DNA of 47,539 nt from Macrostomum lignano (taxonomy: Eukaryota). The notes beneath the pieces are model-generated. The model was not told the DNA's origin. It saw only the letters and a list, made by a program, of their open reading frames with translations, and made no database searches. Made by a program: the position numbers and the translations under genes. Below, piece by piece: positions 4,303 through 42,474 of the stretch (its first letter is position 1; each line of letters begins with the position of its first letter). The stretch lies in NCBI GenBank assembly GCA_002269645.1, contig NIVC01004144.1:1-47539 (forward strand), given 5' to 3'.

Positions 4303-4669
4303 GATGTGACCCGACTGACTGGTGTTGTGACCAAGTTGACTTGTGATGTGACCTTGGTGACTGGTGTTGTGACCACGTTGACTTGTGATGTGACCCGACT
4401 AAATAGTAATGTGACCATGTTGACTGGTGATGTGACCCAGTTGAATGGTGAGGTGACCCGACTGTCTAGTGATGTGACTCAGTTGAATTTTGATGTGACC
4501 CGACTGACTGGTGTTGTGACCACGTTGACTTGTGATGTGACCCGACTATCTAGTGATGTGACCATGTTGACTGGTGATGTGACACAGTTGAATGGTGATG
4601 TGACCCGACTGTCTGGTGATGTGACTCAGTTGACTGTTGATGTGACCCGACTGACTGGTGATGTGACAA
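4303..4669 (+). repeat. 21-bp minisatellite (gatgtgacccgactgactggt-like, ~17 diverged copies)
   Basis: Period is 21 bp. The stop-free frame 4306-4731 reads as LTGDVTQ-type heptads. Confidence 0.95.
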
Positions 4670-5648
4670 CTTTGTATTGTATTTGTATTGTATTGTATTG
4701 TAGCGTATTGTACAACTTTGGGCTGGGTTAATTACCATAGAAGAAACTGTAGCGATAGAATGCTTAGAGGAGATTAGTGCAAACAAACGGCATTGAATAA
4801 CGAACTTGAACTTAAATAAACTATAGTGCATCTCAGTGCGTATTGTTAATTACGTATTGTTAATTACGCATCTCAATGCGTATTGTACTTGAATTCATAT
4901 TGCGTATTGTACTGCGCCGCCGCCGCCGCCGCCATATTCGCCGATTCACAAGGCATCTCGACCGCCGCCAATGCACTCGCTCTCATCGATGTCGCAGTCG
5001 CCGTGTCTGGATCCTCGGGTTCATTAACGCCGAAGTCGCCGCATCTGCAGCCACAGTCGCTTTGGATGCCTGTCGTGACAATGCGTGTGCCCGGATACGA
5101 TTGATAGTATGCGAGCTGACACAACTATTAGAGCCACTGCTAGGAATCCTATTTAACCGGCGTCGTTGATGTGTCGGCGGAGTTGACAAATGATGTTCGC
5201 TCGACAACTGTGATGACGAAGATGCATCTGATACAATTTCGCAGTCGGAGCGCACCATCTGTTGACGTCGCCTTTTACAACTGGGTTTGCTCGTCGGCGA
5301 AGCAAACGACGCGCCATCTTGAACACTCGGCCCTGTGATAATTATTTGTAAAAAAGACGCTAATTTATACAATTTAATCCTTTCATTCAACAAATCAAGC
5401 AAACAAGCAATCAATCAATCAATCAATCAGTCAGTTCAAACGCTCATGTATAACAGACCTGTGTCTATCAGTCATTTGAACTAGTTAAGCTTAGATATAT
5501 TGATAAAATATAATCGTTTTCTACTCACTTTTATTGCCATTATTGGCTGTCTGCGACTTTGGCACTGTCGATGGCTCGTCAGCAGCGACAACAGCAGCAG
5601 CACCAGTAGCACCAGTAGCAGCATCAGCAGCAGCAGCAGCAGCAGCAA

Positions 5649-7126
5649 CAGGTATCCGAAGTTTGCAGAACAGTCGGCAACCGCTGCCGTCTCCTAGCGT
5701 GCCTCGCTGCCAGGTCGTGGGGCTGGTCTAAAGACAGTCTCCTAACTACCTTCAAAGCAATGCAACTCAGCATCCTGCACTACGCGTCACCAGCATGGCA
5801 ACCCTGGCTAGCAGACACCGCCATGTCTTATCTCCAACGCGCGCAGAACCAGGCACTCCGTATTGTCACAGGTCAGCTTCGCACAACCCCGGCTGAGGCT
5901 CTCCACCTCGAGGCTGGAGTGTGCACCGTCGCTACCATGCGCGACCAACTCTGCCTCGCGGCGTACGAAAAAGCGCTGCGCCTCCCGGAGGACCACCCGC
6001 GCCACCGCGCGGCCGCGGCCCAGGTTCCGCACCGCACGGCCAGAAACAGCTGGCGCCACCGCGCCCAGCAACTTCTGGCAAGAATGCCGGCAAACCTGGG
6101 CCGCCGCGAAGCCCTCCCACCGCTCCCCCGCTGCCCTTGGATCCACCTGGCTGCGGGCTGGACCGTGACGCGCTTGCTGTCGACCGTCGCCGTCAGACCC
6201 AGGCAGGCTGCTCACCCGACGACGCAACAAGACAGCGCTGACTTAGCCAGGGACCAGGCGATATCATCCGTCCGCACGGCGAACGCTGACCTGGTTCTTT
6301 ACACGGACGGCTCCGCCGAAGGCGGCTGCTCCGAGGGGGGCGCAGCATGCGTGGTCACCCGCCGCGGCGACCCCGCCTCCCCGCAGGTCGTCGACACCGT
6401 CGCTGCCCGCGGCGCCTCGCCGACCTGCAGCTTCGACGAGGAGCGCCGCGCCCTCGGACTGGCCATGGCCTGGCTCAACGACCATCAAGTCACCGGCCGA
6501 GTGTTGATCTGCTCCGACAGTCGCGCACTGCTCGACGCCCTCATGAGCATCGTGCCGAGATGCTCGCTCCCGGACTTGAACTGCCGGGTTGCCTCCCTCA
6601 CTCTCCAGTGGATCCCAGCGCACTGCGGCATCCCTGGTAACGAGATGGCGGACGCAGCCGCCAAGAATGCCGCATCCATCGCTGGCGCGCCAGCGAGCAC
6701 CTCGTACAGCAGCGCGGTGGCAGCGGTCAGGCGCGAGATCGGCGACCCGCCCCTGACCCACGCCCGCACGATTTCTGTGTACCGCGCGCTCAACCGGCAA
6801 CGCGACCGCGCCGAACTTCAGAATCGTCAGGATGCCGTCCTCCTGGCGAGGCTCCGCGCGGGCCACTGCAGCCTTCTCCGCGCGTACAGTCGCATCGTCA
6901 ACCCGACGGCGGACCCCATTTGCCCACGCTGCGAGGGGGGCCCGGAAGACCTCGAGCACTGGCTCGGTTGCCCGGCCCTCCGGAGGCTCCGCCTCGAGCT
7001 GTTCGACGAGGACACCCTGGACCCCGGGATTCTGACCGTCGCCCCGCGAGGTCGGTGGCGCTTGCGAGGCGAAGCCTCTGACTCCCTCGGCGCCTTTGCC
7101 CCCAACAACAACAACAACAACAACAA

Positions 7127-7130
<4 letters not shown>
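5649..7130 (+). mobile_element. 5'-truncated non-LTR retrotransposon (I/Ingi/Nimb-like): RT C-terminus, RNase H, Cys/His knuckle and (CAA)n tail
   Basis: The in-frame translation from 5649 is QVSEVCRTVGNRCRLLACLAARSWGWSKDSLLTTFKAMQLSILHYASPAW. RNase H motifs YTDGS, FDEERRAL, ICSDS and WIPAHCGIPGNEMAD are present, as is CPRCEGGPEDLEHWLGCP. The (CAA)n tail spans 7103-7130. GC content is much higher than in the flanks. Confidence 0.92.
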
Positions 7131-7183
<53 letters not shown>

Positions 7184-7663
7184 CAGCAATAACAACAACA
7201 GCATCAGTAGCAGCATGGGCATCGGTCGGCACAGACGCGCGGTTTGCATCGTCAGACTGTTGTCCAGTTGCTGTTGATAACGCAGCATCTAGATCGCAGT
7301 CGGCCGCGATTTTTCGAGTTTCAACAGCATCGTGTACATTGTCGGCCGAGGTATCCGATGCATGCACCAGTTTAGCGTACAGGTCGTTTACGATGGGTTC
7401 TAAACGAGTCGGTGTAGTTCGTTGAGCACCATCTCCACAACCGGCAACGTTGTTACTAGGCGCATTATTAACAACAACAGCAGCTGTCGACGACAATTGT
7501 TGGTCAAGTCGATGCCGCGTATTGGCAATACTGAAATCGAGGGGTTGCACCTGCTCGTAGGCATCATCGAGGACAGGGCTCGCCTTCTCGTCAGCATTGG
7601 ACAAGTCGTCGTCGACACTCGAAGCGGCATCGGCGGCGGCGGCGGCGGCGGCGTTACGCATAC

Positions 7664-8135: not shown

Positions 8136-9232
8136 TATAGAATCAGATTCTATTCGTCCTTTTTTCGAGCTAGTTAGTCGAGCTTTAAGTAGAGGGTTGA
8201 TGTCAAAATTACTCAGAGATATGTCTATGTCTTAACCTATTCAGATAATAGCCTGTCCAATGTGTACAGGATGCAATTGACAAATCGAGCGCACCACAAG
8301 TAGAGTTTTAAGTCAAAAAAATGTCTATGTGTTAACATAGTCTGATAATAAACTGTCTATGTTGTACAGTGTGCACTTGATAGATCGAGCGCGCATGTAC
8401 CAAGGAGTTCTATAGCTAGTATAATGGATTGGAATCTTGCTTTACTTTTATATGCAATATTATGTGCAAATATAGAATCCAACTGACTAACAGACAATTG
8501 TCTATGGTTCAACCTACGATAAAGCCACCCCAGAGTGTATATTATAGCATTCTATGAGTGTATGCGCCCTGTATAGGAAACTTTTGTCTATGGGTTGAAT
8601 GGAAATTCAAGCGTTTCCAAGTACAGTTTAACTTTGAAGATCAATTGAAACAGTATAGCTGCACTTGTATACTGAATCAATCATTTAATGGTGTTTATGA
8701 CTTTAACTGATTTACTAATGCCTACAAGAATGCATAGTTTGAATCAAAAGCTAGTTTGTGTTTTCCTCAGGCAGATTTTCCAAGATAGAAATGTCCAAGA
8801 TACGGAAAAAATGTAAAACAATAAAAAAGAATGGCTCGCATTTGTAAATTTAATTTTTATCTGAAACTATATTATATTTCAAACGAAAATTTTAATCAGC
8901 TTATTGACAGTTATTATCCGTTGTTCGTATGCTGGTTTGAATTTTTACTTTTTTTTCTGTTATATCGAATATAAATCGTGTACTCAGATTTGACTCAATT
9001 GAGCAAAGCTTTGACAAACAGACGCATACACGCGCACACACACGCATACATACATACATACATATATACTTACACAATGTTAGCAGTTTTGATTACATTC
9101 ATTAGCAAATCAACATTGACAATTAGAAACACACACATATTTGGCATCTATGAGGACAAGTTTGACAGTTAATTAAGATTACTAATTTGTTGATCTATTA
9201 CAGCCAAATTATTGTGTTGAGTGAGAATGAGA

Positions 9233-10296
9233 TTGACTGGTGATGTGACCGTGTTGACAGGTGATGTGAATATGTTCACTAGTGATGTGACCAAATTGAA
9301 TGGTGATGTGACACAGTTAAATGGTGATGTGACCCAGTTGAATGGTGATGTGACGAAGTTGAATGGTGATGTGACCCAGTTGAATGGTGATGTGACGAAG
9401 TTGAATGGTGATGTGACCCTGACTGACTGGTGATGTGACACAGAATGACTGGTGATGTAACCAAGTTGAATGGTTATCTGACCAAGTTGAATGGTTATCT
9501 GACCCAGTTGAATGGTGATGTGACCCAGTTGAATGGTGATGTGACCCAGACTGAATGGTGTTGTGACCCATACTGACTAGTGATGTGACCCAGTTGAATG
9601 GTGATGTGACCCAGACTGACTGGTGATATGACCCATACTGACTGGTGATATGACACAGACTGAATGGTGATGTGACCCAGGCTGACTGGTGATGTGACTC
9701 AGGCTGACTGGTGATGTGACTCAGGCTGAATGGTGATGTGACCCAGGCTGACTGGTGATGTGACCCAGGCTGACTGGTGATGTGACCCAGACTGAATGGT
9801 GATATGACACAGACTAAATGGTGATGTTACCCATACTGACTGGTGATGTGACCCCGACTGAATGGTGATGTGACCCATACTGAATGGTGATGTTACCCAT
9901 ACTGACTGGTGATGTGACCCATACTGAATGGTGATGTGACCCATACTGAATGGTGATGTTACCCATACTGACTGGTGATGTGACCCATACTGACTGGTGA
10001 TGTGACCCAGGCTGACTGGTGATGTGACTCAGGCTGACTGATGATGTGACCCAGGCTGAATGGTGATGTGACACATACTGACTGGTGATGTGACCCAGAC
10101 TGAATGGTGATGTGACCCATACTGACTGGTGATGTGACTCAGGCTGACTGGTGATGTGACTCAGGCTGACTGGTGATGTGACTCAGGCTGACTGTTGATG
10201 TGACTCAGGCCGACTGGTGATGTGACTTAGGCTGACTGGTGATGTGACCCAGGCTGACTGGTGATGTGACCCAGATTGATATGTGATGTGACCACA
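9233..10296 (+). repeat. Minisatellite of the same family as 4303-4669; 21-bp units switch to 22-bp units
   Basis: Period is 21 at 9301/9322 and 22 at 10141/10163. Confidence 0.95.
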
Positions 10297-16340: not shown

Positions 16341-17687
16341 CGAGGTGTATTCAAAAAGTTCTTTTCGGTGCCCTACAAAACTGAACACAAAACAACTGGA
16401 ACTATGAAAACACTGTTAGATTGCTTAACATGATTCGGTCACTCAACATATTCACCGCCAATGTCTTTGCACTTCTGCCAGCGATTTACCAGGCCTCTGA
16501 TTCCGGAACTCACACCACTCGCGTCCGTTTGGCGAACAGCTTGATTGCATGCAGCCTCAATGTGCTCGACGCTGTCGAATCGAATGCCCCGAAGGTGCTT
16601 CTTCACAGATGGAAATAAGAAGAAGTCGCACGGCGACAAATCAGGCGAATAGGCTGGATGTTGGAGCACTTCCCATCCCCATTTGCTCAGGAGTTCCACG
16701 ACGTTGTGCTTGCGATGTGCTGGCGCATTGTCGTGCAGCAGGATCACGCCAGATTCCAGCAGATCAGGGCGCTTCTTTCGTATTGCTGGGCGCAGCTTCT
16801 CCTGCAGAATCCACTTGTAGTAGTCCCCATTGACGGTGGTTCCTTGTGGGACTGCCCAGTTCAGCAGGATTCCTTGGGAATCAAAAAAACATGACGTGCA
16901 TGATCTTCATCGCGCCCTGCTTCCTGATGGCCTTCTGAGGTCTTGGAGAATGTGCTGGAAGCCATTCGGCAGACTGGGCCTTTGTCTCAGGATCCCAGCT
17001 GTAAACCCACGTCTCGTCTCCAGCTACAATTCTTGATAGAAAATCCTCCCCTTCTCGATGGAACCGACGCAGGTGGCTGCTTGAAGCCACAGTTCGCTGC
17101 ATCTTTTGCTCACCTGTCAGCAGGTGTGGCACCCACTTGCAAAACTTTTTCTGCAGGTGAAGACGCTCCGTCAGAATGGTGTGGACGCTTCCTACTGACA
17201 CACCAACGTCTTCTGCCAACTCTTCGCAAGTCCGTCGCCGATCATCATCCAGGAGCTCTTGCACTTTCTTCACAACAGTCTCGTTGGTTGCAGTCATCGG
17301 CCTTCCAGAGCGATCATTGTCCTCAACGCTCTCTCTTCCCTCAGCGAACAGCCGGTACCATTTTCGAACTGTCTGCTCAGTTGGTGCACATTTGCCAAGC
17401 ACTTGCTGAAGCTCCCTAAACATATCCGGTGGCTTTTTTCCTTGCAGAAACTGAAACTTCATCAAGCTTCGAACGTCTTGCTTTGAAAATGATTCAGCCA
17501 TGGCCAAGAAATTGAGTGGTAGCTGATAGAAATGTTCGCTGCTCTAACATAGTTGCAAACTGAGACTTAAAACCCTAGGAACGTTTAGGCCATAGACATA
17601 ACTTGGTGAAATCGCTAAAATTCTGTTTACAAGGCTTTTTAAAAATAAATGCCAAAGGACCGAAAAGAACTTTTTGAATACACCTCG
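16341..17687 (-). mobile_element. Full-length mariner (DD34D) DNA transposon, 1347 bp
   Basis: Perfect 29-bp TIRs cgaggtgtattcaaaaagttcttttcggt at 16341-16369 and 17659-17687, flanked by TA on both sides. Confidence 0.97.
16439..17507 (-). CDS. Mariner transposase, split by one +1 frameshift in a T7 run at ~16883-16889 (355 aa if corrected)
   Basis: Motifs WVPHLL, GDETW, HDNAPAH and YSPDLSPCD are present, with 34 residues between the 2nd and 3rd Asp. Removing one T gives MFFDSQGILLNWAVPQGTTVNGDYYKWIL...ILLHDNA. Confidence 0.93.
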
Positions 17688-17931: not shown

Positions 17932-17975
17932 ACACACACACACACACACAGACACACACACACACACACACACAC
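17932..17975. repeat. (CA)n microsatellite
   Basis: Direct reading of the sequence. Confidence 0.95.
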
Positions 17976-18597
17976 AAACGTGCACGAGGCACTTATTGGC
18001 CAAGTGTGCAAAAACTTGCACATATTGGGACTGCTCCGACACACGAAAAATCACACACACACACGTCCCCACACAGGCAATTTTCAACCCACCAAATAGA
18101 TTTTTATTGACAACATGCTTTTGGCTTACTGAAAACAGTTGGAAAGCATTTTTCGAGGTGCATTGAACTCACAACAGATTGTACATGTATACTTGTCTAA
18201 AACAGAATTAAAAAACCCTGGTGTCTTGCTGAATTCCACTTAAGGCAATAATATCAGCACGTCAAATTTCACCAGATAATTTCAGCGATCATAGATTATA
18301 GAAGACAGGATGGTAAATGGCAAGGGACTTTAAGGTTATCGAAAACAAACGACATTGACACATATCAAAAAAATTTTACGATCTGAATAAACAAAATTTG
18401 CTACATTTAGTGCCACTGGGAAAAAACAATTCTGTAGCGAAACTCCACTGTTCATAAAAATGTACTTTATTGATTATGACACAATCACTAGAATTACTCA
18501 AAAGGTACATGTCAGCTATTCGGACCCACAGAATGCTACGTAAAAGGATGCGGAAATGAACCACACTATAGCAGAAGCCAGCACACACTATAGTATG

Positions 18598-18737
18598 GGG
18601 CTGTCCCAACAATTCCACCATAGCCAGTGTGGATAGGGCTGTCCCAACAATTCCACCATAGCCAGTGTGGATAGGGCTGTCCCAACAATTCCACCATAGC
18701 CAGTGTGGATAGGGCTGTCCCAACAATTCCAGCATAG
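18598..18737. repeat. 38-bp tandem repeat, ~3.6 copies
   Basis: ctgtcccaacaattcc recurs at 18601, 18639, 18677 and 18715. Confidence 0.95.
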
Positions 18738-18914
18738 CTTGAAAAAGAATATACACAAATACTATAAAAAGCAAATGCTAGAGCTCTACCGCGGTCATTG
18801 CACCGGATTTTATTAGAAACAGACTGCAAAAAATGCGTCCTCTAAATAATATTCCAGTGAAGCACACAACAGTTAATCGGCTTCTCGATTCAGAAAATTA
18901 AAAAAATAACCAGC

Positions 18915-19585
18915 TCCGCCAGAAAACTCATGAATTAACTGACTGCTGCACAGATAGCGGCTGCTGCTGCTGCTGCAGCTTGGCAGCAGCAAGTGAACCA
19001 AATGACGGATGCAGCGGCGAGATCAGAATGCTCGCTGCTGATCGTTAAAGCGCATTCTTGTCTCTTAGGCATGTCGCTGGCGTTGCTGACTTCAGAATCT
19101 GCGAGGAAAAGAAATCAATTAAGATAGGCTTGCTTTAGTAATCATTAATAGGCTATAAAGGAACCCTTTAATAGAACGTGTTCAACTAATGCTGGGTCTG
19201 TTTTGAAAAGTCAGAACTCAGAAGTAGTCGCGATTAGAATCAGTATTGTCCCAATAAGTGCGACCCAACAAATGCTGTTCAAAAAATAGGCCTGGCTGCA
19301 ATGTCCCAATAAATGCCCAACAAATTACTAGCCTTGAGCTAGGCTGGGCTGTGTTTACTATTCTTTGCGTTTGTAGCTTGTGTCCCAACAATGCCACTGA
19401 GATTGTTGCATTGCTTTTGAATTGTGCTCTACCAAGTAACACAAGTACTCTGGTGTACAATACTTCTACAGCAGATAATACTCACCCAAAACAGATCGTC
19501 TCTTTCTCTTTAATCCTGTGCCGGACGGGTTTTCTTCAGATCCACCAGAAAATTCACAAATAGACTGACTGCCTGCACGGATAGC

Positions 19586-19619
<34 letters not shown>

Positions 19620-20239
19620 GCTGCTGCTGCGGCTTGTGAGCAGCAAGTGAACCAAATGACGGATGCAGCGGCGAGATCAGAATGCTCGCTGCTGATCGTT
19701 AAAGCGCATTCTTGTCTCTTAGGCATGTCGCTGGCGTTGCTGACTTCAGAATCTGCGAGGAAAAGAAATCAATTAAGATAGGCTTGCTTTAGTAATCATT
19801 AATAGGCTATAAAGGAACCCTTTAATAGAACGTGTTCAACTAATGCTGGGTCTGTTTTGAAAAGTCAGAACTCAGAAGTAGTCGCGATTAGAATCAGTAT
19901 TGTCCCAATAAGTGCGACCCAACAAATGCTGTTCAAAAAATAGGCCTGGCTGCAATGTCCCAATAAATGCCCAACAAATTACTAGCCTTGAGCTAGGCTG
20001 GGCTGTGTTTACTATTCTTTGCGTTTGTAGCTTGTGTCCCAACAATGCCACTGAGATTGTTGCATTGCTTTTGAATTGTGCTCTACCAAGTAACACAAGT
20101 ACTCTGGTGTACAATACTTCTACAGCAGATAATACTCACCCAAAACAGATCGTCTCTTTCTCTTTAATCCTGTGCCGGACGGGTTTTCTTCAGATCCACC
20201 AGAAAATTCACAAATAGACTGACTGCCTGCACGGATAGC

Positions 20240-20281
<42 letters not shown>

Positions 20282-20890
20282 GCGCTTGTGAGCAGCAAGT
20301 GAACCAAATGACGGATGCAGCGGCGAGATCAGAATGCTCGCTGCTGATCGTTAAAGCGCATTCTTGTCTCTTAGGCATGTCGCTGGCGTTGCTGACTTCA
20401 GAATCTGCGAGGAAAAGAAATCAATTAAGATAGGCTTGCTTTAGTAATCATTAATAGGCTATAAAGGAACCCTTTAATAGAACGTGTTCAACTAATGCTG
20501 GGTCTGTTTTGAAAAGTCAGAACTCAGAAGTAGTCGCGATTAGAATCAGTATTGTCCCAATAAGTGCGACCCAACAAATGCTGTTCAAAAAATAGGCCTG
20601 GCTGCAATGTCCCAATAAATGCCCAACAAATTACTAGCCTTGAGCTAGGCTGGGCTGTGTTTACTATTCTTGCGTTTGTAGCTTGTGTCCCAACAATGCC
20701 ACTGAGATTGTTGCATTGCTTTTGAATTGTGCTCTACCAGGTAACACAAGTACTCTGGTGTACAATACTTCTACAGCAGATAATACTCACCCAAAACAGA
20801 TCGTCTCTTTCTCTTTAATCCTGTGCCGGACGGGTTTTCTTCAGATCCACCAGAAAATTCACAAATAGACTGACTGCCTGCACGGATAGC

Positions 20891-20932
<42 letters not shown>

Positions 20933-21540
20933 GGCTTGTGAGCAGCAAGTGAACCAAATGACGGATGCAGCGGCGAGATCAGAATGCTCGCTGCTGATCG
21001 TTAAAGCGCATTCTTGTCTCTTAGGCATGTCGCTGGCGTGCTGACTTCAGAATCTGCGAGGAAAAGAAATCAATTAAGATAGGCTTGCTTTAGTAATCAT
21101 TAATAGGCTATAAAGGAACCCTTTAATAGAACGTGTTCAACTAATGCTGGGTCTGTTTTGAAAAGTCAGAACTCAGAAGTAGTCGCGATTAGAATCAGTA
21201 TTGTCCCAATAAGTGCGACCCAACAAATGCTGTTCAAAAAATAGGCCTGGCTGCAATGTCCCAATAAATGCCCAACAAATTACTAGCCTTGAGCTAGGCT
21301 GGGCTGTGTTTACTATTCTTTGCGTTTGTAGCTTGTGTCCCAACAATGCCACTGAGATTGTTGCATTGCTTTTGAATTGTGCTCTACCAGGTAACACAAG
21401 TACTCTGGTGTACAATACTTCTACAGCAGATAATACTCACCCAAAACAGATCGTCTCTTTCTCTTTAATCCTGTGCCGGACGGGTTTTCTTCAGATCCAC
21501 CAGAAAATTCACAAATAGACTGACTGCCTGCACGGATAGC

Positions 21541-21579
<39 letters not shown>

Positions 21580-22187
21580 GGCTTGTGAGCAGCAAGTGAA
21601 CCAAATGACGGATGCAGCGGCGAGATCAGAATGCTCGCTGCTGATCGTTAAAGCGCATTCTTGTCTCTTAGGCATGTCGCTGGCGTTGCTGACTTCAGAA
21701 GCTGCGAGGAAAAGAAATCAATTAAGATAGGCTTGCTTTAGTAATCATTAATAGGCTATAAAGGAACCCTTTAATAGAACGTGTTCAACTAATGCTGGGT
21801 CTGTTTTGAAAAGTCAGAACTCAGAAGTAGTCGCGATTAGAATCAGTATTGTCCCAATAAGTGCGACCCAACAAATGCTGTTCAAAAAATAGGCCTGGCT
21901 GCAATGTCCCAATAAATGCCCAACAAATTACTAGCCTTGAGCTAGGCTGGGCTGTGTTTACTATTCATTGCGTTTGTAGCTTGTGTCCCAACAATGCCAC
22001 TGAGATTGTTGCATTGCTTTTGAATTGTGCTCTACAGGTAACACAAGTACTCTGGTGTACAATACTTCTACAGCAGATAATACTCACCCAAAACAGATCG
22101 TCTCTTTCTCTTTAATCCTGTGCCAGACGGGTTTTCTTCAGATCCACCAGAAAATTCACAAATAGACTGACTGCCTGCACGGATAGC

Positions 22188-22223
<36 letters not shown>

Positions 22224-22831
22224 GGCTTGTGAGCAGCAAGTGAACCAAATGACGGATGCAGCGGCGAGATCAGAATGCTCGCTGCTGATCGTTAAAGCGC
22301 ATTCTTGTCTCTTAGGCATGTCGCTGGCGTTGCTGACTTCAGAAGCTGCGAGGAAAAGAAATCAATTAAGATAGGCTTGCTTTAGTAATCATTAATAGGC
22401 TATAAAGGAACCCTTTAATAGAACGTGTTCAACTAATGCTGGGTCTGTTTTGAAAAGTCAGAACTCAGAAGTAGTCGCGATTAGAATCAGTATTGTCCCA
22501 ATAAGTGCGACCCAACAAATGCTGTTCAAAAAATAGGCCTGGCTGCAATGTCCCAATAAATGCCCAACAAATTACTAGCCTTGAGCTAGGCTGGGCTGTG
22601 TTTACTATTCTTTGCGTTTGTAGCTTGTGTCCCAACAATGCCACTGAGATTGTTGCATTGCTTTTGAATTGTGCTCTACCAGGTAACACAAGTACTCTGG
22701 TGTACAATACTTCTACAGCAGATAATACTCACCCAAAACAGATCGTCTCTTTCTCTTTAATCCTGTGCCGACGGGTTTTCTTCAGATCCACCAGAAAATT
22801 CACAAATAGACTGACTGCCTGCACGGATAGC

Positions 22832-22864
<33 letters not shown>

Positions 22865-23471
22865 GGCTTGTGAGCAGCAAGTGAACCAAATGACGGATGC
22901 AGCGGCGAGATCAGAATGCTCGCTGCTGATCGTTAAAGCGCATTCTTGTCTCTTAGGCATGTCGCTGGCGTTGCTGACTTCAGAAGCTGCGAGGAAAAGA
23001 AATCAATTAAGATAGGCTTGCTTTAGTAATCATTAATAGGCTATAAAGGAACCCTTTAATAGAACGTGTTCAACTAATGCTGGGTCTGTTTTGAAAAGTC
23101 AGAACTCAGAAGTAGTCGCGATTAGAATCAGTATTGTCCCAATAAGTGCGACCCAACAAATGCTGTTCAAAAAATAGGCCTGGCTGCAATGTCCCAATAA
23201 ATGCCCAACAAATTACTAGCCTTGAGCTAGGCTGGGCTGTGTTTACTATTCTTGCGTTTGTAGCTTGTGTCCCAACAATGCCACTGAGATTGTTGCATTG
23301 CTTTTGAATTGTGCTCTACCAGGTAACACAAGTACTCTGGTGTACAATACTTCTACAGCAGATAATACTCACCCAAAACAGATCGTCTCTTTCTCTTTAA
23401 TCCTGTGCCGACGGGTTTTCTTCAGATCCACCAGAAAATTCACAAATAGACTGACTGCCTGCACGGATAGC

Positions 23472-23507
<36 letters not shown>

Positions 23508-24114
23508 GGCTTGTGAGCAGCAAGTGAACCAAATGACGGATGCAGCGGCGAGATCAGAATGCTCGCTGCTGATCGTTAAAGCGCATTCTTGTCTCTTAGG
23601 CATGTCGCTGGCGTTGCTGACTTCAGAAGCTGCGAGGAAAAGAAATCAATTAAGATAGGCTTGCTTTAGTAATCATTAATAGGCTATAAAGGAACCCTTT
23701 AATAGAACGTGTTCAACTAATGCTGGGTCTGTTTTGAAAAGTCAGAACTCAGAAGTAGTCGCGATTAGAATCAGTATTGTCCCAATAAGTGCGACCCAAC
23801 AAATGCTGTTCAAAAAATAGGCCTGGCTGCAATGTCCCAATAAATGCCCAACAAATTACTAGCCTTGAGCTAGGCTGGGCTGTGTTTACTATTCTTGCGT
23901 TTGTAGCTTGTGTCCCAACAATGCCACTGAGATTGTTGCATTGCTTTTGAATTGTGCTCTACAGGTAACACAAGTACTCTGGTGTACAATACTTCTACAG
24001 CAGATAATACTCACCCAAAACAGATCGTCTCTTTCTCTTTAATCCTGTGCCGGACGGGTTTTCTTCAGATCCACCAGAAAATTCACAAATAGACTGACTG
24101 CCTGCACGGATAGC

Positions 24115-24158
<44 letters not shown>

Positions 24159-25397
24159 GTGAGCAGCAAGTGAACCAAATGACGGATGCAGCGGCGAGAT
24201 CAGAATGCTCGCTGCTGATCGTTAAAGCGCATTCTTGTCTCTTAGGCATGTCGCTGGCGTGGCTGACTTCAGAATCTGCGAGGAAAAGAAATCAATTAAG
24301 ATAGGCTTGCTTTAGTAATCATTAATAGGCTATAAAGGAACCCTTTAATAGAACGTGTTCAACTAATGCTGGGTCTGTTTTGAAAAGTCAGAACTCAGAA
24401 GTAGTCGCGATTAGAATCAGTATTGTCCCAATAAGTGCGACCCAACAAATGCTGTTCAAAAAATAGGCCTGGCTGCAATGTCCCAATAAATGCCCAACAA
24501 ATTACTAGCCTTGAGCTAGGCTGGGCTGTGTTTACTATTCTTGCGTTTGTAGCTTGTGTCCCAACAATGCCACTGAGATTGTTGCATTGCTTTTGAATTG
24601 TGCTCTACCAAGTAACACAAGTACTCTGGTGTACAATACTTCTACAGCAGATAATACTCACCCAAAACAGATCGTCTCTTTCTCTTTAATCCTGTGCCGG
24701 ACGGGTTTTCTTCAGATCCACCAGAAAATTCACAAATAGACTGACTGCCTGCACGGATAGCGGCTGCTGCTGCTGCTGCTGCTGCTGCGGCTTGTGAGCA
24801 GCAAGTGAACCAAATGACGGATGCAGCGGCGAGATCAGAATGCTCGCTGCTGATCGTTAAAGCGCATTCTTGTCTCTTAGGCATGTCGCTGGCGTTGCTG
24901 ACTTCAGAAGCTGCGAGGAAAAGAAATCAATTAAGATAGGCTTGCTTTAGTAATCATTAATAGGCTATAAAGGAACCCTTTAATAGAACGTGTTCAACTA
25001 ATGCTGGGTCTGTTTTGAAAAGTCAGAACTCAGAAGTAGTCGCGATTAGAATCAGTATTGTCCCAATAAGTGCGACCCAACAAATGCTGTTCAAAAAATA
25101 GGCCTGGCTGCAATGTCCCAATAAATGCCCAACAAATTACTAGCCTTGAGCTAGGCTGGGCTGTGTTTACTATTCTTTGCGTTTGTAGCTTGTGTCCCAA
25201 CAATGCCACTGAGATTGTTGCATTGCTTTTGAATTGTGCTCTATCAGGTAACACAAGTACTCTGGTGTACAATACTTCTACAGCAGATAATACTCACCCA
25301 AAACAGATCGTCTCTTTCTCTTTAATCCTGTGCCAGACGGGTTTTCTTCAGATCCACCAGAAAATTCACAAATAGACTGACTGCCTGCACGGATAGC

Positions 25398-25430
<33 letters not shown>

Positions 25431-25475
25431 GGCTTGTGAGCAGCAAGTGAACCAAATGACGGATGCAGCGGCGAG
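18915..25475. repeat. Tandem array of ~640-655-bp units (~10 units, 11 variable (CTG)n tracts)
   Basis: Units are near-identical. Marker gactgactgcctgcacggatagcgg recurs about every 650 bp from ~19563 to ~25375. Confidence 0.98.
19486..19752 (-). CDS. Representative symmetric phase-1 exon of the 650-bp array (DSEVSNASDMPKRQ...polyAla...GTGLKRKRRSVL)
   Basis: Acceptor tttcttttcctcgcAG and donor TTG G/GTGAGT. The exon is 267 nt (a multiple of 3) and only phase 1 is open. Confidence 0.55.
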
Positions 25476-25492
25476 TTTGAATGCGGATGAAC
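25298..25492 (-). CDS. First exon of the array, with its own acceptor (GSSAFKLAAASVIW...SVL)
   Basis: Acceptor tttttcttttgtgcgcccacgcacAG, the same GTGAGT donor, 195 nt, phase 1-1. Confidence 0.5.
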
Positions 25493-26051
25493 CTGTGCGT
25501 GGGCGCACAAAAGAAAAATAACTCATGAGAAATCGGTCTGATTTGTTTGAAAACAGATTTAAATGTCGCTGTTCTAATAAATGCTTCATTGTCAATGAAA
25601 TTTTACTGTACAATTAAAATACTCGAGGTTTGTCCCAACGCTGCTGCTTGTGTGAGTCAGATGGAGTACAATTTTCACTTTCCCGATAGTGCCGCAACAA
25701 CTTACTTTCTCACTAGCTGACTGCAGGCAGGCTTGCTTGTTTTAATAATGCCCTAGAGAACAAAACACTTATTGCAATTGAGTTTCAGTTACTAGGAGTT
25801 GCAATTTTTTGAGATCCTATCTCTTTGCTGACCGCCCATCTTTCCATTCAGATGAGCTTCTTTTTTGCTGCTGACTCTGCCCTGCTTTTCTTTCGGCGTT
25901 TGCCTTTGCAGTAAGCTTTGTTTCTCGTTCTAGAATGCTGTCATTTTTATACTGTTCTTTAGTTATGCAATAGCACTGCTTTGGGTAAAAAAATAATTCG
26001 ACTATCGAATTATAACAGTAATATATTACATTAGTTGCCCAGAAAACTCAC

Positions 26052-26846
26052 ATAGTATTTCTCCAAGTCTCTAGTACTGTGGGCGATGTGTCGTGCGAGA
26101 TTTCTTTCCCAAATGTTTTGATTGAAACTTTTAGTAAAATTTGTTCTTCCTAGAAGTGTAAATTTTGCCTACTTATGATTGCTCAACTGGCTGTTGTAAA
26201 TTAATTGATAAATAAGGTGATCGTCCCGCCTCTCTTATATTTCACTGAGCTCAGAGTATTACTAGGCTGCTTATTATTTTTTTCAACCTACAAAAAATAC
26301 GACATATACGAGTACGAGACAAGACTTACTTGACAATGAAGGCCAATCTGTTTGTTATAGAAGAAAACGGTAGCTTATCGATATCAACGTATCTGGAATT
26401 TTAGAAAAGTACATATGTAAATTCCGGTTAAGTTTTTATTTAATCATAAAATTTTAAAAAGAATTTTAAATTCTACTTACATATGTGTAATGGTTCCTAG
26501 CCAAGTCTTTTCATGCCAGGTCATGCATGGAAACTCTTGTGACGTGGCACATTTTGTCTGTGTAGTGCAGGTCTCGTAAATGAATTATATTCGTTTGAAC
26601 ATATGCAGTACGCCGTTTGTCAAAGGGAACTTCTACATGTACCTTTCCATTAGAATTGGCTCTTCCTCTTGTAGGCCTCAACTTCAGTGTAAACTTTATC
26701 CTGACTCCCTTGCGCCCGCCTCTCCTCCCCGCTTCCCCCCGCCGCGATAGGAATGTACACGTGGCCTGGGTAAGGGATTGCCTGGGTCTTGTACACGCTT
26801 GTCTTAACACTTCTGCTCTGTACGTGGGTTTATCTTTACGATCCAA
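26052..26846 (-). pseudogene. Intron-containing tyrosine-recombinase-like pseudogene (Crypton-like fold)
   Basis: Exons 26392-26330 and 26190-26052 splice in phase 2 to YVDIDKLPFSSITNRLAFIVNQLSNHK*AKFTLLGRTNFTKSFNQNIWERNLARHIAHSTRDLEKYY, which resembles YR box II (R..H..Y). ORF 26511-26846 contains QACTRPRQSLTQAT (possible box I Arg) and VEVPFDKRRTAY (possible catalytic Lys). Motif recognition only. Confidence 0.45.
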
Positions 26847-27940
26847 GATAAGCAGAATTGTTTTTCAGGAAGGCCTAGTAGTTAGTTTTGGGCCAACTAG
26901 TCATCGATTTAGACTTTACAGTGACAGTGACACTCAAACATGTGCTAGCAGTCCATGCAGTCATCTTAAGTTTCTTGGTATCTCCGTACTTTTCAGTACA
27001 CCAGACGATAATTATCATAATTCTAGGAAAAATTTTGCTACATAGTATGGCTGCCCAAACCCAGGCCAATAAGGAAGTCATTTAAAGCCTTAGAGATTAA
27101 ACGTTTCCCTTTAATACTCGTCCTTGGTTTTCTCGGGAAATGCAAAGTTTTTCTTTGCCCTTTATTTCTTTGCTCTAAAAGCGCTTCATAAGACTGTGAG
27201 AATTTCCACCGGAAAACTACCTCACTCAAAGTGTCACTTTACGTTAATGGCCTCCAGTCACTAACTTGAGTCAGTTAATACCCATTCACATATGACAAAT
27301 AGATTAATGCAGCTGACTGAAAACGAGAATTTCAGTTAAAATGGCCGAGGGCACAGGCGGATGTAACCTTAATTTGCCATGTTTCGTGTATAAGTGAAAT
27401 TGGAAGCTAATGAATTTAGATGCTAGCTGTTTCTATGCAAAAATCTAAATATACTAAATCTATAAGGTTTGTATGCTTGATTGTAATATTCTAAATCTTT
27501 ATTAAATTATTTCATATTTTATAGTAAACACGATGCCAAATGTCAGGATCCTTTCAAGTGTCGATTGGCAGCCCTGTGGAGAACCTCTATCTGTTACTTG
27601 TAGTAGACTTTCTTGATATTGTAAGAAATATTGTAATAAAACGAGAATTCCGATTTGAGACCCAATTGTTCTGTTGGATCAGACCATCAGTTCGCATAAT
27701 TTTTTAAACTTCTTAGGACACTGCAAATCATTAGATTCCCGTGTTTGATTAAAAATATGAAAAAATGACATTGATTTTTGAAAGGAGAATCGAAAGACGG
27801 TTCCAATGAATATTTTTTCATTTCAATAGAATTCATTTTTGGAAGTGTCGGGACGCACTTATTGGGCCTGGCCCAACACATTTTTGGTCCTAATAGCACG
27901 GGTCAGTTTATACACGCTTGTCCCAAGAAATGCCTAATGC

Positions 27941-27941
27941 A

Positions 27942-27982
<41 letters not shown>
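27941..27982. repeat. (CA)n microsatellite
   Basis: Direct reading of the sequence. Confidence 0.95.
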
Positions 27983-27987
<5 letters not shown>

Positions 27988-28002
27988 ACACGTGAACTTT
28001 AG

Positions 28003-29990: not shown

Positions 29991-30471
29991 CCGAGGGAGC
30001 ACCTTGCCGGCCGCGTCGGTGCTAGAGGCCGACATCAGCCCGACGGACCTTCGCAAAACGACCCTATCTGCCAGTTTATAGTAGTTTTGTCAAAGAGAAA
30101 AAAAAATTAATATTTTATTTGTTATTGGGTATTTATGGTAATTATTATAGTTTCAGAAATCAATTTTTTGCTTTGGTTTATTTAATTTTATTTTTAACAG
30201 AAAATTATTTGTCCTCCTGCCAAATTTTTTCTTCCTGCCGCCTCTGCCGCCGCGTCCGCCCGTGGTGCTCGTGAGTCCTTGTCGTTACTCCTGAAATGTT
30301 GGTTTACTAAAAGATTATACATTCTGTAACATAATATATGATTACATCATAATTGCTATAAGCTAAAGCTGATGTCTTGCTAATTGGGAGTCTGCTTTTG
30401 GTGTTTGTTTGCCTCATAAAAAAAGAAATACAAACTGAATATGTCAGTTTCAAGGTGCCGGGTTGAATCAC

Positions 30472-32555
30472 TCATAATGACCAATGGGTTTGTATTTTGC
30501 GTTTTTTCGAAAGTCCGGTACCCTGAGCCAATCGGAGAGACTGACAAGTATGGACTTTCCGCAAGGCACGCGTTGCCCCCCCCCTTCCCCCCCCAGAGAC
30601 CTGCGAGAATGCCAGAAAACAACTCGTAGTTGCACAGCGCGTATTTAAGTTGCGGGTTTACCTTGCGCTTCCGCTTGGCAGACCGGGCCTCCCTCGCCGG
30701 CTGCGTTTGCAGCCGTCGCTTCTCCTTCTGCGTCAGCGGCGGCGGCGGCGGCGGCGGGGGTGTCGGCGAATGCGGCGGCGGCGGAGTTGTCGGCGGCGGT
30801 GGCGGAGGTGTCGGCGGCGGTGGCGGAGATGCCGGCGGCGGCAGCGGGGGTGTCGGCGGATGCGGAGGTGTCGGCGAATGCGGCGGCGGTGGCGGAGGTG
30901 TCGGCGGCGGTGGCGGAGATGTCAGCGGCGGTGGCGGAGGTGTCTGCGGCGGTGGCGGAGATGTCAGCGGCGGTGGCGGAGGTGTCGGCGGCGGTGGCGG
31001 AGATGCCGGCGGCGGCAGCGGAGGTGTCGGCGGATGCGGAGGTGTCGGCGAATGCGGCGGAGGTGGCGGAGGTGTCGGCGGCGGTGGCGGAGTTGTCAGC
31101 GGCGGTGGCGGAGGTGTCGGCGGCGGTGGCGGAGATGCCGGCGGCGGCAGCGGAGGTGTCGGCGGATGCGGAGGTGTCGGCGGATTTGGAGGTGTCGGCG
31201 AATGCGGCGGCGGTGGCGGAGGTGTCGGCGGCGGTGGCGGAGGTGTCGGCGGCGGAGGTGTCGGCGGCGGTGGCGGAGATGTCGGTGGCGGAGGTGTCGG
31301 CGGCGGTGGTGGAGATGTCGGCGGCGGAAGTGTCGGCGGCGGTGGCGGAGATGTCGGCGGCGGCAGCGGAGGTGTCGGCGGATGCGGAGGTGTTGCTGCT
31401 GCTGCGGCGGCTGGTGCTGCTGCTGCTGCGGCTGGTGTTGCTGCTGCTGCTGCTGCTGCTCCGGCGCCGGCGGTCGCGGCGGCAGTGTGCAACAGTGATT
31501 CCGAGGAAAGTGGAAGTTTATTTTTTTTAGTAAAGAGCGCTAATTGACAATTACTTGGAAATCGAAAATATTTGTACAAATTTTAGTTTCTTATATCACT
31601 TTAGTCACAGTTGCGTCTGATACATCCTACTTCTAAGTAAGAACAGTTTAAATCCTTAAATCTGTTCTAATGCACATTGCCAGGCAATGGCAAAGAAAAA
31701 ATTGCCAAACAATGAAAAATTAGCTTTCAGCAAAAACTCTCAGCATTTAAGCTGTCAGCATTTAAGCTCTCAGCATTTAAGCTCTCAGCATTTAAGCTCT
31801 CAGCATTTAAGCTCTCAGCATTTAAGCTCTCAGCATTTAAGCTCTCACACAGTGTTCACCGAGTAAATACTCATCACCTACCAGCTGGTGGCAGCTCCAA
31901 CACTTGGCGCAGCACTTGGCGCAGCTGCGCAGCATCTAGGCGGTCGACGACCGTTGCCGCCTGATGCTGCTGCGGCTGCTGCGGCTGCTGCGGCTGTTGC
32001 GGCTGCTCCAACTGCGGGGCGAGCGACCCCTGCACTATGGCCGGCAGGTTATTGAGGTCGCCCCCCCGCAGCTCCACCCCGTGGGTCCAGAGGACAGAGC
32101 CGGCACCCACGCGCCAGTACATCCTCTGGAGTAAAATGAAATGGGATGGGTGGGATACAGCTCTCAGGTCAGCAAGAGAGCGAGAGTGTGAGCGAAAGCG
32201 AGAGTGATATCGAGAGAGCGAGAGCATGAGAGCGAGAGCGAGAGTGAGAGCAAGAGCGAGAGAGCGAGAGCAAGTGGCAAGGAAAGGGAAATAATAACAT
32301 AGGATGAGTACTTACGGAGTTCCCTCCAGAGTATTGGTAGGTCTGCGCGGCGTGCCGACGGCCGCCTGAAGCACCTCCGACGCCCAGAAGACATGGGCAC
32401 AACCTATCCCGCACCTGTGCGGGTCGGCCCTGCATGTTTACCCAGATGGCAAATTTGCCAACTGGGCAAACAAACTGAGCACCGACAGGTGCGGGCTCGA
32501 TTGTGACAGCACCCATGCCTTCTGGGCCTGCTTGCATGTAATCTTCGACCTTCAT
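30472..32555 (-). CDS. Putative four-exon gene: unknown N-terminal domain, QQP repeats, SAP-like helix, long Pro-rich repeat and basic tail. Exons 32555-32316, 32125-31882, ~31455-30662, 30600-30472
   Basis: TCC/GTAAGT..ttttactccAG/AGG is a phase 0 in-frame junction. Donor G/GTAGGT lies at 31881. AAG/GTAAAC..cattctcgcAG bounds a 61-bp intron, and the final exon is 43 codons to TGA. The acceptor of exon 3 is uncertain. Confidence 0.55.
30725..31460. repeat. GC-rich compound minisatellite (ggcggcggtggcggaggtgtc variants) encoding the Pro-rich tract on the minus strand
   Basis: All unit variants are multiples of 3, so ORFs stay open in several frames. Confidence 0.93.
31737..31846. repeat. 15-bp minisatellite (ctctcagcatttaag), ~7 copies, intronic
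   Basis: Direct reading of the sequence. Confidence 0.95.
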
Positions 32556-36226: not shown

Positions 36227-38781
36227 TCACAATATACTAAATCTCTAAGGTCTGTCTGTCTGACCGGTATTCCAGTCCACAGCCTGAATGCCTGAACCGA
36301 TTTTTTTCAAACTTGCTTTATTCAACTCAAAATTCTTGTGAGATTGTGTGGGTGTAATTGCATTGAAAAATTCGAATGGGAAGTTGGTTAAATATTCGAA
36401 ACGAGTTTTCCCAATGCTTTCAATGGGAGGCTAGAAAAGGTCAAAATCTCACTAACTGAATAGCAATTCCAATTAAGATTGCGCCACAACTTTTCTCTGT
36501 TCACTGTGTACGCCTCAATACTGGCTGCAATAGGGGAGAGTAAAATAATGCTCAGTGGCTGCGTGTGTACATTCTGACCCTGGCTGACTGGCGGACTGCA
36601 TAGACAATTGCTATTAATAGATTTCACTCAACTCTGCATTGGCTCTGCCTGCACAACCTGTGCACACTGAGCAGCCTATCACTGCTATGTATTTGACTGC
36701 AGTGCCGAAGCATATATGGCTGATTTTTTGCGCCCTCCGATCAGTAGGCGGAATAGCCACAGTGTAGGCACTAGGACTAGGTTTAGGCTAGGCATAAGGT
36801 CCAAGGTTCGAGTCCGCCTCCCCAGCGGATAATTAAAATTAAATAAATTCATTCATTAGTAGCTTCTGCCTCGACTATTTTGAACATTTTTAGAATAATT
36901 TTTTGCTACTCGCACAAGCCAGTAAGCAAATTTGATTTGATTTGAAAAATCCAAAGATCCCATTAATTGTTATTATCTAGGTCTATAGAAGTAGATATTA
37001 CTAAACTGCAGATGATGCTGCTAAACTGCTGAGGTATTGCTAAATGCTGAGTGGTGCAAAAGATTGCCGATATGTGTCGAAAATCTATTAGTGAGCCATA
37101 AAATGCTGAGCAAATTTTTAAATCATTGAAAAGATCATTGCAGTTTGCTGAAAATATTGAGGGGCCAGCTGAGAGAACTGCAGACTGCTGAGGGGATAAA
37201 TGAGAATTATTAAGGAAACACTTGCTGACTGCAAATTAATTGACTGCAGACTACTGAGGGGAACTGCAGATTGTTGAAAGGATCATTGCAGACTGCAAAG
37301 GGGACAAACTGCAAACTCCTGACGTCGGTTAGTTTCTCGAGACTTATGAGCGTATAAGCTGCAAACTGCCGAGGGGATAGCTGCAGACTGCTAGGATAAT
37401 AATGGCAGACTTCTGAGGCGGATATCTAACTGTGAATAATTGTAGCTTGCAGAAGGGACAATTCTGGGTCCCTGAGGGATAAATGAATAATATTAATAAA
37501 AGTTGTAGAGTGCAAATGAGTTGTATGACTGCAGTCTGTTTTGCGGAATTAGAAGGGATAATTTCAGGTTGTTGTGGGGATAACTGCCAATTTCTGGGGA
37601 GGGTTTAACTTTAAACTTCTGAGGCGATAATAGTAGTCACCTTTTAGCAGTTTGGGAGTGGTGCTAATCTGGGGAGCGGTGCTAATCTAAGGGAGTGGGG
37701 CTAATATAAAGGAGTGGGGGGCTAATATAAAGGAGTGGGGGGGCTAATCTGGGGGATTGGGGCTAATCTGGGGGATTGGGGCTAATCTGGAGGAAGTAGC
37801 GGTGCGAATTTTTGCGGAGTGGTGCAAATCTGGGAAGGTGAAACTATCTGGGAAGCGGCGGTAATCTGTGGAGCGGTGCTAATCTAGGCTGAGTGCTAAT
37901 CTGGGCTGAGTGCTAATCTGGGCTGAGTGCTAATCTGGGCTGAGTGCTAATCTGGGCAGAGTGCTAATCTAGGCTGAGTGCTAATCTAGGCTGAGTGCTA
38001 TCTTAGGCTGAGTGCTAATCTGGGCTGAGTACTAATCTAGGCTGAGTGCTAATCTGGGCTGAGTGCTAATCTAGGCTGAGTGCTAATCTAGGCTGAGTGC
38101 TAATCTAGGCTGAGTGCTATCTTAGGCTGAGTGCTAATCTGGGCTGAGTGCTAATCTGGGCTGAGTGCTAATCTGGGCTGAGTGCTAATCTGGGCTGAGT
38201 GCTAATCTAGGCTGAGTGCTAATCTGGGCGCAGTGCTAATCTGGGCTGAGTGCTAATCTAGGCTGAGTGCTAATCTGGGCTGAGTGCTAATCTGGGCTGA
38301 GTGCTAATCTGGGCTGAGTGCTAATCTAGGCTGAGTGCTAATCTGGGCGCAGTGCTAATCTGGGCGTAGTGCTAATCTGGGCGCAGTGCTAATCTGGGCG
38401 CAGTGCTAATCTGGGGGAAGTGGGGCTAATCTGGGGGTGTGCGGCTAATATGGGGGGAGTAGTGCTAATCTGGGGGAAGTGGGGCTAATCTGGGGGTGTA
38501 TGGCTAATGTGGGAGAATAGTGCTAATCTGGTGAGGATTTGAAAATAACGAATAATCATAAAATAACTATAAATGAATTGACATTACAAAGTTTCAAACA
38601 TTAGGAAATGTAACATTTTAGAACTTTTTAGTCTCAGTAAAATTGGTGTACAACTGCTTAGAGATTTGCTACTGCAGAACTGCTCAGAGATTAGTGAGAT
38701 TTGCTCAGCGACTGTGCAAAACTGCTTATAGACAAGCGCTAAACTGCTAAGAAGCCACCAGGAGGGGGGCTAAATGGCTAG
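36227..38781 (+). mobile_element. Non-autonomous Helitron-like element A1 with an internal 17-bp satellite
   Basis: 5' end TCacaatatactaa; 3' end gccaccaggaggggggc-taaatggCTAG. Homologous to A2 over ~1.3 kb. Confidence 0.7.
37880..38410. repeat. 17-bp minisatellite (gctgagtgctaatctgg), with degenerate flanks 37660-38530
   Basis: Direct reading of the sequence. Confidence 0.96.
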
Positions 38782-42470: not shown

Positions 42471-42474
42471 TAAA

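Follow-up and report, generated by a model that had tools for sequence, protein, structure and literature searches.

A probable orphan gene of Macrostomum lignano built as an array of spliced exon-intron cassettes on a dispersed 10-kb repeat

We analyzed a stretch of 47,539 nucleotides from the flatworm Macrostomum lignano (contig NIVC01004144.1 of assembly GCA_002269645.1, positions 1 to 47,539; hereafter the window), which carries a tandem array of exon-intron cassettes on its minus strand. Repeat finding located 10 copies of a ~645-bp unit in 18911–25492, with spacings of 635–654 bp, and homology to the unit extends from 25484 to 18911, or ~10.2 units. A preliminary description of this DNA had proposed that every unit holds, on the minus strand, an acceptor, a phase-1 exon and a GTGAGT donor, and this was borne out by 10 donors and 10 acceptors. 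All 10 donors are identical and match TTTTGG/GTGAGTA exactly (G/GTGAGT, the slash marking the splice site), with the last exon base before each donor at 25298, 24662, 24015, 23373, 22733, 22088, 21441, 20791, 20140 and 19486. The same interval contains 10 minus-strand tttcttttcctcgCAG sites, and all 10 acceptors are exact TTTCTTTTCCTCGCAG matches, ending at 24911, 24276, 23630, 22987, 22346, 21702, 21054, 20405, 19753 and 19099. Both the donor GTGAG and the acceptor CAG agree with the splice consensus of the species (donor GT[G/A]AG, acceptor CAG; PMC8629364). The introns are 385–387 nt long, with 5–9 stops in every frame, and the nine internal exons measure 249, 261, 257, 254, 258, 261, 263, 265 and 267 nt, differing in length only by a (GCA)n microsatellite and four 1-bp indels. 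One tandem unit holds one complete exon and one complete intron and so forms an iterated exon-intron cassette. As had been described, the first unit has its own acceptor (...cgcacag/GT, exon start 25492), and the last exon ends in a stop (TAA, 18937–18935). The gene body comprises the following features:

25493–25520, minus strand: pyrimidine-rich tract and CAG acceptor of the first exon (...cgcacag/GT), sequence conserved in 4/4 loci compared
25298–25492, minus strand: first exon, 195 nt, a partial unit from ...SSAFK-LAAASVIWFTCCSQ(A)n...KRKRRSVL, poly-Ala frame open
24911–25297, minus strand: intron 1, 387 nt, GTGAGT...CGCAG
24662–24910, minus strand: internal exon 1, 249 nt, intact, phase 1-1
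24276–24661, minus strand: intron preceding internal exon 2
24015–24275, minus strand: internal exon 2, 261 nt, intact
23373–23629, minus strand: internal exon 3, 257 nt, out of frame through a 1-bp deletion in CCCGT[C]CGG; once the RNA is spliced, the poly-Ala frame terminates inside it
22733–22986, minus strand: internal exon 4, 254 nt, same 1-bp deletion as internal exon 3
22088–22345, minus strand: internal exon 5, 258 nt, intact
21441–21701, minus strand: internal exon 6, 261 nt, intact
20791–21053, minus strand: internal exon 7, 263 nt, out of frame through a 1-bp deletion in CAGC[A]ACG that is also found in L002 unit 16 (loci L001–L004 are introduced below)
20140–20404, minus strand: internal exon 8, 265 nt, out of frame because of one additional G bordering the (GCA)n tract
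19486–19752, minus strand: internal exon 9, 267 nt, intact
18935–19098, minus strand: coding part of the terminal exon, ending ...FTCCCQAAAAAAAAICAAVS, TAA stop at 18937–18935
18809–18814, minus strand: AATAAA polyadenylation signal, conserved in L001 and L003

Internal exons 1, 2, 5, 6 and 9 are a multiple of three in length, open in a single frame and symmetric (phase 1-1), the open frame starting with the two bases that complete the codon begun by the final G of the preceding exon. These intact exons encode (D/A)SEVS(N/H)ASDMPKRQECALTISSEHSDLAAASVIWFTCCSQ(A)n IRAGSQSICEFSGGSEENPSGTGLKRKRRSVL, and SQSICEFSGGSEENPSGTGLK is an example of a peptide in this poly-Ala frame; the poly-Ala tract and KRKRR sequence noted previously in the exons were both seen in the unit translation. 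Together with the first exon, the five intact internal exons account for the six intact copies that had been counted among the ten donor-bearing ones. Modules carry both an N-glycosylation-like NAS sequon and the multibasic motif RKRR; the RKRR site occurs in every unit and is also kept in a diverged sister family. At the DNA level the predicted spliced junction is GTTTTGG/(A/C)TTCTGAAG, in the forms GTTTTGG/ATTCTGAAG and GTTTTGG/CTTCTGAAG. Among composition-shuffled versions of the exon, 2% had the poly-Ala frame open and 6% had any forward frame open. By itself, the open frame is evidence of modest weight; the open frame, the perfect splice signals and the symmetric phase together exceed chance expectation.

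In a search of 5.8 billion protein clusters, the conceptually spliced product gave 28 protein matches, all from M. lignano. Beyond these, an exhaustive phmmer search against 1.84 billion representatives brought in nothing but more M. lignano entries and a single chance hit. The predicted junction KRKRRSVL(A/D)SEVS occurs in four Mlig_3_7 proteins in GenBank (BOX15_Mlig026960g1, Mlig003618g1, Mlig029855g13 and Mlig033615g2; P0004, P0005, P0008 and P0029), in agreement with the proposal that the unit is an exon-plus-intron cassette whose copies are joined in frame. The genomic loci of these four proteins are referred to as L001–L004. Splicing L002 and L003 at the predicted GT..AG sites reproduced P0005 and P0008 exactly, and the same main-site splicing reproduced P0004 and P0029 except for details. 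The Mlig_3_7 annotation is a genome-guided transcriptome made from STAR-mapped RNA-seq, StringTie/TACO and BLAT-mapped de novo transcripts (PMC5730564). Because models derived from RNA-seq carry the junction, and two of them are reproduced exactly at the predicted sites, these gene models indirectly show head-to-tail cis-splicing of consecutive units. The preliminary description had named a lack of splice signals in related arrays, along with an absence of spliced junction reads, as what would speak against it; the signals are retained in 40/40 units examined. No expression data by gene ID were found in full texts or in the supplements of PMC5816591.

Other database entries for the repeat are less straightforward. 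UniProt models of the ML2 assembly (MAKER) hop between frames at weak sites (GGCA/GTCAGT, ACCC/GTCCGG and cagcag/CGAGC); we did not take this as proof of alternative splicing, and they look like work-arounds of the predictor. The UniRef names 'UCH', 'Rho-GAP', 'BAF250_C' and 'Dymeclin' were considered as signs of fusion to host genes and set aside, with no Pfam match on the stored sequences. The entries concerned (P0015, P0023–P0028 and P0035, named UCH, Rho-GAP or BAF250_C domain-containing, or Dymeclin) look like mis-annotation or pieces of fused models.

The array is part of a larger dispersed repeat, absent from the preliminary description, whose features in the window are as follows:

17969–27965, minus strand: dispersed repeat block of ~10 kb, in which the array is flanked by a 2.5-kb unique part on the 5' side and 0.95 kb on the 3' side
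27940–27991, no strand: (CA/TG)n microsatellite at the 5' end of the block in gene orientation, from TRF and boundary alignment
17932–17976, no strand: (AC/TG)n microsatellite at the 3' end of the block, from TRF and boundary alignment
18598–18738, minus strand: 38-bp minisatellite, 3.7 copies, with the block-specific TTGTTGGGAC motif

Homology among the window, L001, L003 and L004 is confined to this block, which has sharp TG-rich ends, and the flanks beyond it are unrelated in every pair (block extents are 4420–12458 in L001, 6200–16049 in L003 and from 6075 in L004). L002, the fifth copy, shares the upstream part of the block and extends to the end of its contig. Judged by these boundaries, the block has been copied to at least four unrelated places. 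Its unique parts are 96.7–99.4% identical between copies. We also considered the sister loci as homeologues of a polyploid genome and rejected this, the flanks being unrelated. In L003 (NIVC01000257.1, 1–20371, minus strand of the locus), the whole block lies inside, and antisense to, a gene model of 981 amino acids with a TIR_2 domain; no TIR-domain exons were found in the open reading frames (ORFs) near the block. In L004 (NIVC01003014.1), the array breaks off mid-intron at 11385 after five donors and is followed by unrelated sequence, which could reflect an insertion or rearrangement.

Two short motifs mark the block. TTGTTGGGAC occurs 46 times and CCAATAAGTGC 23 times, and 68 of these 69 occurrences fall inside the block; ~1–3 matches would be expected by chance. 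The matches span 18603–25203, 27846–27929 and 17989–18028 of the window, with 4–5 in every intron, as well as in the 38-bp minisatellite and near both block ends, where their orientation is opposite.

We found no conserved start codon for the poly-Ala frame in exon 1 among the loci compared, and no conserved N-terminal signal peptide in that exon. The ATG of the window just upstream of the first acceptor (MSYFSF...) corresponds to ATA plus an indel in other copies. The base directly following the first-exon acceptor is the exact starting point of three protein models (P0025, P0026 and P0028), and this acceptor may serve for trans-splicing of the spliced leader. The M. lignano spliced leader, 35 nt long, ends in ATG (PMC8629364); joined in silico to 25492, it opens a poly-Gln frame encoding a 57-amino-acid peptide that stops before the first junction.

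The fully spliced RNA of the window is 2.84 kb long, and its longest ATG-initiated ORF encodes 238 amino acids. A ten-module protein from this copy is not supported: the poly-Ala frame runs for 311 codons before it closes in internal exon 3, and the copy as assembled cannot encode ten modules unless broken exons are skipped. The symmetric 1-1 phase agrees with the proposal that any number of units could be spliced in frame, and 5/9 internal exons are intact here. Any product of the window copy would be a low-complexity protein of at most ~3 modules (238 amino acids from the first ATG). In the terminal exon, a 1-bp deletion relative to L001 gives a shorter C terminus. Pfam searches of the unit proteins, the poly-Gln peptide and the block ORFs gave only sub-threshold low-complexity matches such as Bd3614_N, a sequence search of the PDB gave no relative, and an Rfam scan of the whole window gave no RNA family.

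Our alignment comprised 40 complete units, taken from the window and from the sister loci L001, L002 and L003. Outside the microsatellite, variable columns per site were 0.040 in exons and 0.036 in introns (Fisher p=0.83), and indel densities were similar in the two. The exon substitutions comprised 7 nonsynonymous changes, one of them a TGG>TAG nonsense change, and 4 synonymous ones, against a neutral expectation of 77% nonsynonymous. Intact internal exons numbered 21/40 (L001, 5/6; L002, 3/16; L003, 8/9; window, 5/9), and the remainder carried 1-bp indels or a nonsense codon. The TGG>TAG codon has spread by homogenisation through 11 L002 units; in the window, a common deletion is found in units 3 and 4, and the deletion of unit 7 recurs in L002 unit 16. 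The four broken window copies do carry 1-bp indels, as had been reported, but the suggestion that these are sequencing errors is unlikely, because one is common to neighbouring units and another recurs in a different locus; at least the shared and recurrent indels are real alleles and not random errors.

Within the 40 units, pi was 0.006–0.011. Variant haplotypes are array-specific, which indicates that exon and intron evolve in concert. Counted in donors, the arrays at the five loci contain 5 (truncated), 7, 10, 10 and at least 17 units; at these loci the repeat is not strictly satellite DNA, which is characterized by hundreds to thousands of copies in long arrays. The incomplete units at the two ends of the array fit an origin by unequal crossing-over between two LAAASVIWFTCC-bearing segments, as proposed in the preliminary description.

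A diverged sister array is represented by A0A1I8FV09 and A0A1I8HX90 (UniProt), whose unit is ASKVSNASDMPKREDSTSTINSEHSDIADALATSCLLAAQEQQQTLLMQTGCSQSIDDLSCGAKDNSSGKGLKRKRRSVL. Over ~80 codons per unit it shows 50% protein identity to the window unit, with in-frame gaps only. It keeps the junction RRSVL/A/S, and its C-terminal tail GAGFFIVSES matches GRAGYFLSF of L001. Conservation between the families is seen in the NAS sequon, PKR, SEHSD and GLKRKRRSVL; it does not extend to the hydrophobic poly-Ala/VIWFTCC segment, which resembles a by-product of the microsatellite. Because a family that has diverged by 50% keeps the same frame, junction and C-terminal tail, the poly-Ala frame appears to be ancestral and formerly protein-coding. 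DNA of the diverged family (P0031/P0033) is not on record, and a second homology search found no member with a GenBank location.

Taken together, these data make it probable, in our judgment, that the array is a young orphan gene of M. lignano, a spliced exon-intron cassette array that sits on a dispersed 10-kb repeat and whose ancestrally coding frame is now weakly constrained. On the minus strand, the central part of this lineage-restricted gene consists of ~645-bp cassettes, each a ~250-nt symmetric phase-1 exon plus a 386-nt GT-AG intron. The mini-gene extends from the acceptor at 25493/25492 to the stop and the AATAAA near 18810, within the ~10-kb block; the RNA-derived models indicate that the array is transcribed and that consecutive units are cis-spliced head to tail. 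Unequal crossing-over or gene conversion would make the array grow, shrink and homogenise, with exon and intron changing in concert, and the present copies, with constraint weak or relaxed, would be decaying. Should the message be trans-spliced, the ATG of the leader itself would open the 57-codon poly-Gln frame instead.

Several points weigh against this interpretation. The splicing evidence consists of deposited gene models, all of the GenBank ones partial and lacking a 5' end or start codon, and RNA-seq reads multi-map among copies that are 97–99% identical, so the expressed copy cannot be assigned, that of the window included. The diverged family is represented by MAKER models of the older ML2 assembly, which favour open frames. 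Mlig_3_7 is a long-read assembly in which some 1-bp indels may be errors, overstating decay, and a pi below 1% leaves the exon-versus-intron test with little power. Finally, units diverge between loci by ~0.6%, compared with 1.6–3.3% for the unique parts of the block, and this high likeness of units could reflect not just conversion but also selection acting on the unit in its entirety.

The strongest competing explanation, which we nevertheless hold to be unlikely, is that the array is a fully functional gene for a modular protein. Its product would be a long repeat polyprotein, such as a precursor for secretion that is cleaved at RKRR to give ~80-amino-acid glycopeptides, or a nuclear protein in which KRKRR recurs as a nuclear-localisation signal, with module number tuned by array length and exon skipping, and the frameshifts would be assembly errors or be skipped. 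Symmetric phase-1 exons of 3n length would suit such a gene, and phase is retained when a broken exon is skipped. The same can be said of the frame, junction, NAS, PKR, SEHSD and GLKRKRRSVL kept in a 50%-diverged family, of the 8/9 and 5/6 intact internal exons in L003 and L001, and of the label 'Secreted protein' that UniProt attaches to some of the models. It is difficult to reconcile with a functional protein that the change homogenised over 11 L002 units is a nonsense substitution and not an indel, that one frameshift is common to neighbouring units and another to two loci, and that exon diversity equals intron diversity. Exon 1 also lacks a conserved ATG or N-terminal signal peptide, the hydrophobic poly-Ala segment is not kept in the sister family, and neither Pfam nor PDB yielded a relative.

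The absence of exon conservation beyond that of introns also bears on a second alternative, to which we give somewhat less credence: a splicing-competent non-coding repeat, transcribed from a mobile or duplicated element, whose splice sites were inherited from a dead gene, which yields a spliced long non-coding RNA or small-RNA precursor, and in which the frame is a relic. A non-coding repeat would fit with the breakage of roughly half of the exons, with the lack of a conserved start codon and with the position of the spliced-leader ATG in another frame that stops before the first junction. The open frame alone could arise by chance (p ~0.02–0.06), the array lies on a dispersed repeat with a block-specific short motif, and the protein stretches best conserved between families flank the splice junction, a pattern that selection on splicing would also yield. 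On the other hand, a frame that stays open with in-frame indels only over ~80 codons per unit in a diverged family is unlikely without past coding constraint, and L001 and L003 are mostly intact.

The block itself invites a bolder idea, which we consider improbable, that it is a mobile element. Its cargo would be a self-contained trans-spliced mini-gene of expandable symmetric phase-1 exons; landings in introns would donate in-frame exons, so that the element acts as an exon-shuffling vehicle, and TTGTTGGGAC/CCAATAAGTGC would be its recognition sequence. As in a transposable element, the same ends are shared at unrelated sites (window, L001, L003 and L004), and L003, with the block within the TIR-domain gene model, is the example cited for an intron landing. 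Class hallmarks were looked for in the block, and no terminal inverted repeat, long terminal repeat (LTR) or evident target-site duplication was found; its ORFs include no long one with a domain and no transposase or reverse transcriptase remnants. A Helitron, terminal-inverted-repeat or LTR nature of the block was accordingly rejected, these hallmarks being missing.

Least probable of all, and by our estimate very remote, is an annotation or mapping artefact in which the RNA is unspliced and the 'introns' stem from aligners gapping reads, or from collapsed de novo transcripts, over a tandem repeat: such repeats are prone to spurious gapped alignments and the UniProt ML2/MAKER models do hop frames via weak sites such as ACCC/GTCCGG, but repeat slippage would delete whole periods at arbitrary offsets, whereas the gap in four independent GenBank models is exactly GTGAGT...polyY-CAG and removes the stop-rich 386 nt and not the 645-bp period.

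Elsewhere, the window is eukaryotic in character and dense in mini- and microsatellites. On the plus strand, 5760–7277 holds an ORF of 505 amino acids with an RNase H domain (E=7e-11) in a stretch of 70% G+C that ends in poly-Asn/poly-Ser microsatellites, probably a retrotransposon fragment. On the minus strand, 16881–17507 encodes the N-terminal part of a Mos1/mariner-type transposase (HTH_48, E=7e-10), ~430 bp past the 3' TG repeat of the block. Minisatellites at 4302–4674 (a 21/42/147-bp hierarchy) and 9230–10293 (a 22-bp unit, 49 copies) have the common core TGATGTGACC...GACTGG and are likely one repeat family in two places. A 230-bp tandem repeat (3.3 copies, 95% identical) occupies a G+C-rich stretch at 1171–1936. 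The minus-strand frame at 30380–31579, which encodes 399 proline-rich amino acids (PPPPTPPPP...), lies on a 21/42-bp GGCGGnGG minisatellite and is probably a repeat artefact and not a gene, because all frames on both strands are open there. Finally, 37654–44057 is a 6-kb run of G-rich minisatellites with 17–30-bp units such as GTGCTAATCTGGGCTGA and TGGGGTGCTTGCTATCT and a strong positive GC skew.

The architecture of the array is of a known type. In spider silk genes (Argiope MaSp2 and flagelliform spidroins), the protein module corresponds to an exon plus a near-identical 'repetitive intron,' and introns and exons are homogenised within a gene and diverged between genes, with unequal crossing-over as the proposed driver (PMC9779670). 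The M. lignano array resembles these genes in having an exon-intron pair per module, joint homogenisation and poly-Ala in its exons. Spidroins, however, are structural proteins of great length and abundant expression, with conserved domains at both the N and the C terminus and repeats under clear selection, whereas the array is an orphan without terminal domains, with about half of its exons broken and its gene on a dispersed 10-kb repeat.

Human LPA offers a second parallel: its kringle IV type 2 (KIV-2) repeat is an in-frame tandem unit of exons and introns whose highly variable copy number sets protein length. Both tandem units contain whole exons and introns and are in frame at any copy number, but the LPA unit is ~5.5 kb long with two exons and a folded kringle domain, whereas here a 645-bp unit holds a single exon of low-complexity sequence. 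ORF-bearing tandem units of variable copy number are also found in coding macrosatellites such as D4Z4/DUX4 and RS447/USP17; there each unit is a separate intronless gene, whereas here each contributes one exon to a common spliced transcript. Multipeptide precursors with furin-type spacers (insect apidaecin, Baramicin and neuropeptide polyproteins) have an N-terminal signal peptide and repeats usually in one exon. They share with the array modules separated by multibasic R-K-R-R and a quickly evolving module count, but here neither a signal peptide nor a start codon was found to be conserved. The block resembles non-autonomous transposable elements in its two constant ends at unrelated loci, the lack of a long ORF, the internal array and a motif both near the ends and inside; it differs from them in that no terminal inverted repeats, LTRs, target-site duplications or transposase or reverse transcriptase remnants were found.

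The array thus adds no new mechanism to those of spidroins and LPA KIV-2, and the gene models are already public as hypothetical proteins; the novelty is therefore modest. A literature search for a described Macrostomum satellite returned nothing relevant. For annotation, ~35 odd M. lignano protein entries called 'hypothetical' or 'secreted,' or misnamed, become readings of one repeat. The array is also a clean and very young case of how one exon-intron pair can be expanded by unequal crossing-over into an array of variable copy number whose units are still spliced in frame, as in the building of spidroins and LPA. With several independent copies of 5 to at least 17 units and joint homogenisation, it provides a natural series, in a flatworm capable of transgenesis, for studying concerted evolution, exon definition in a perfectly repeated pre-mRNA and the birth or decay of orphan repeat proteins.

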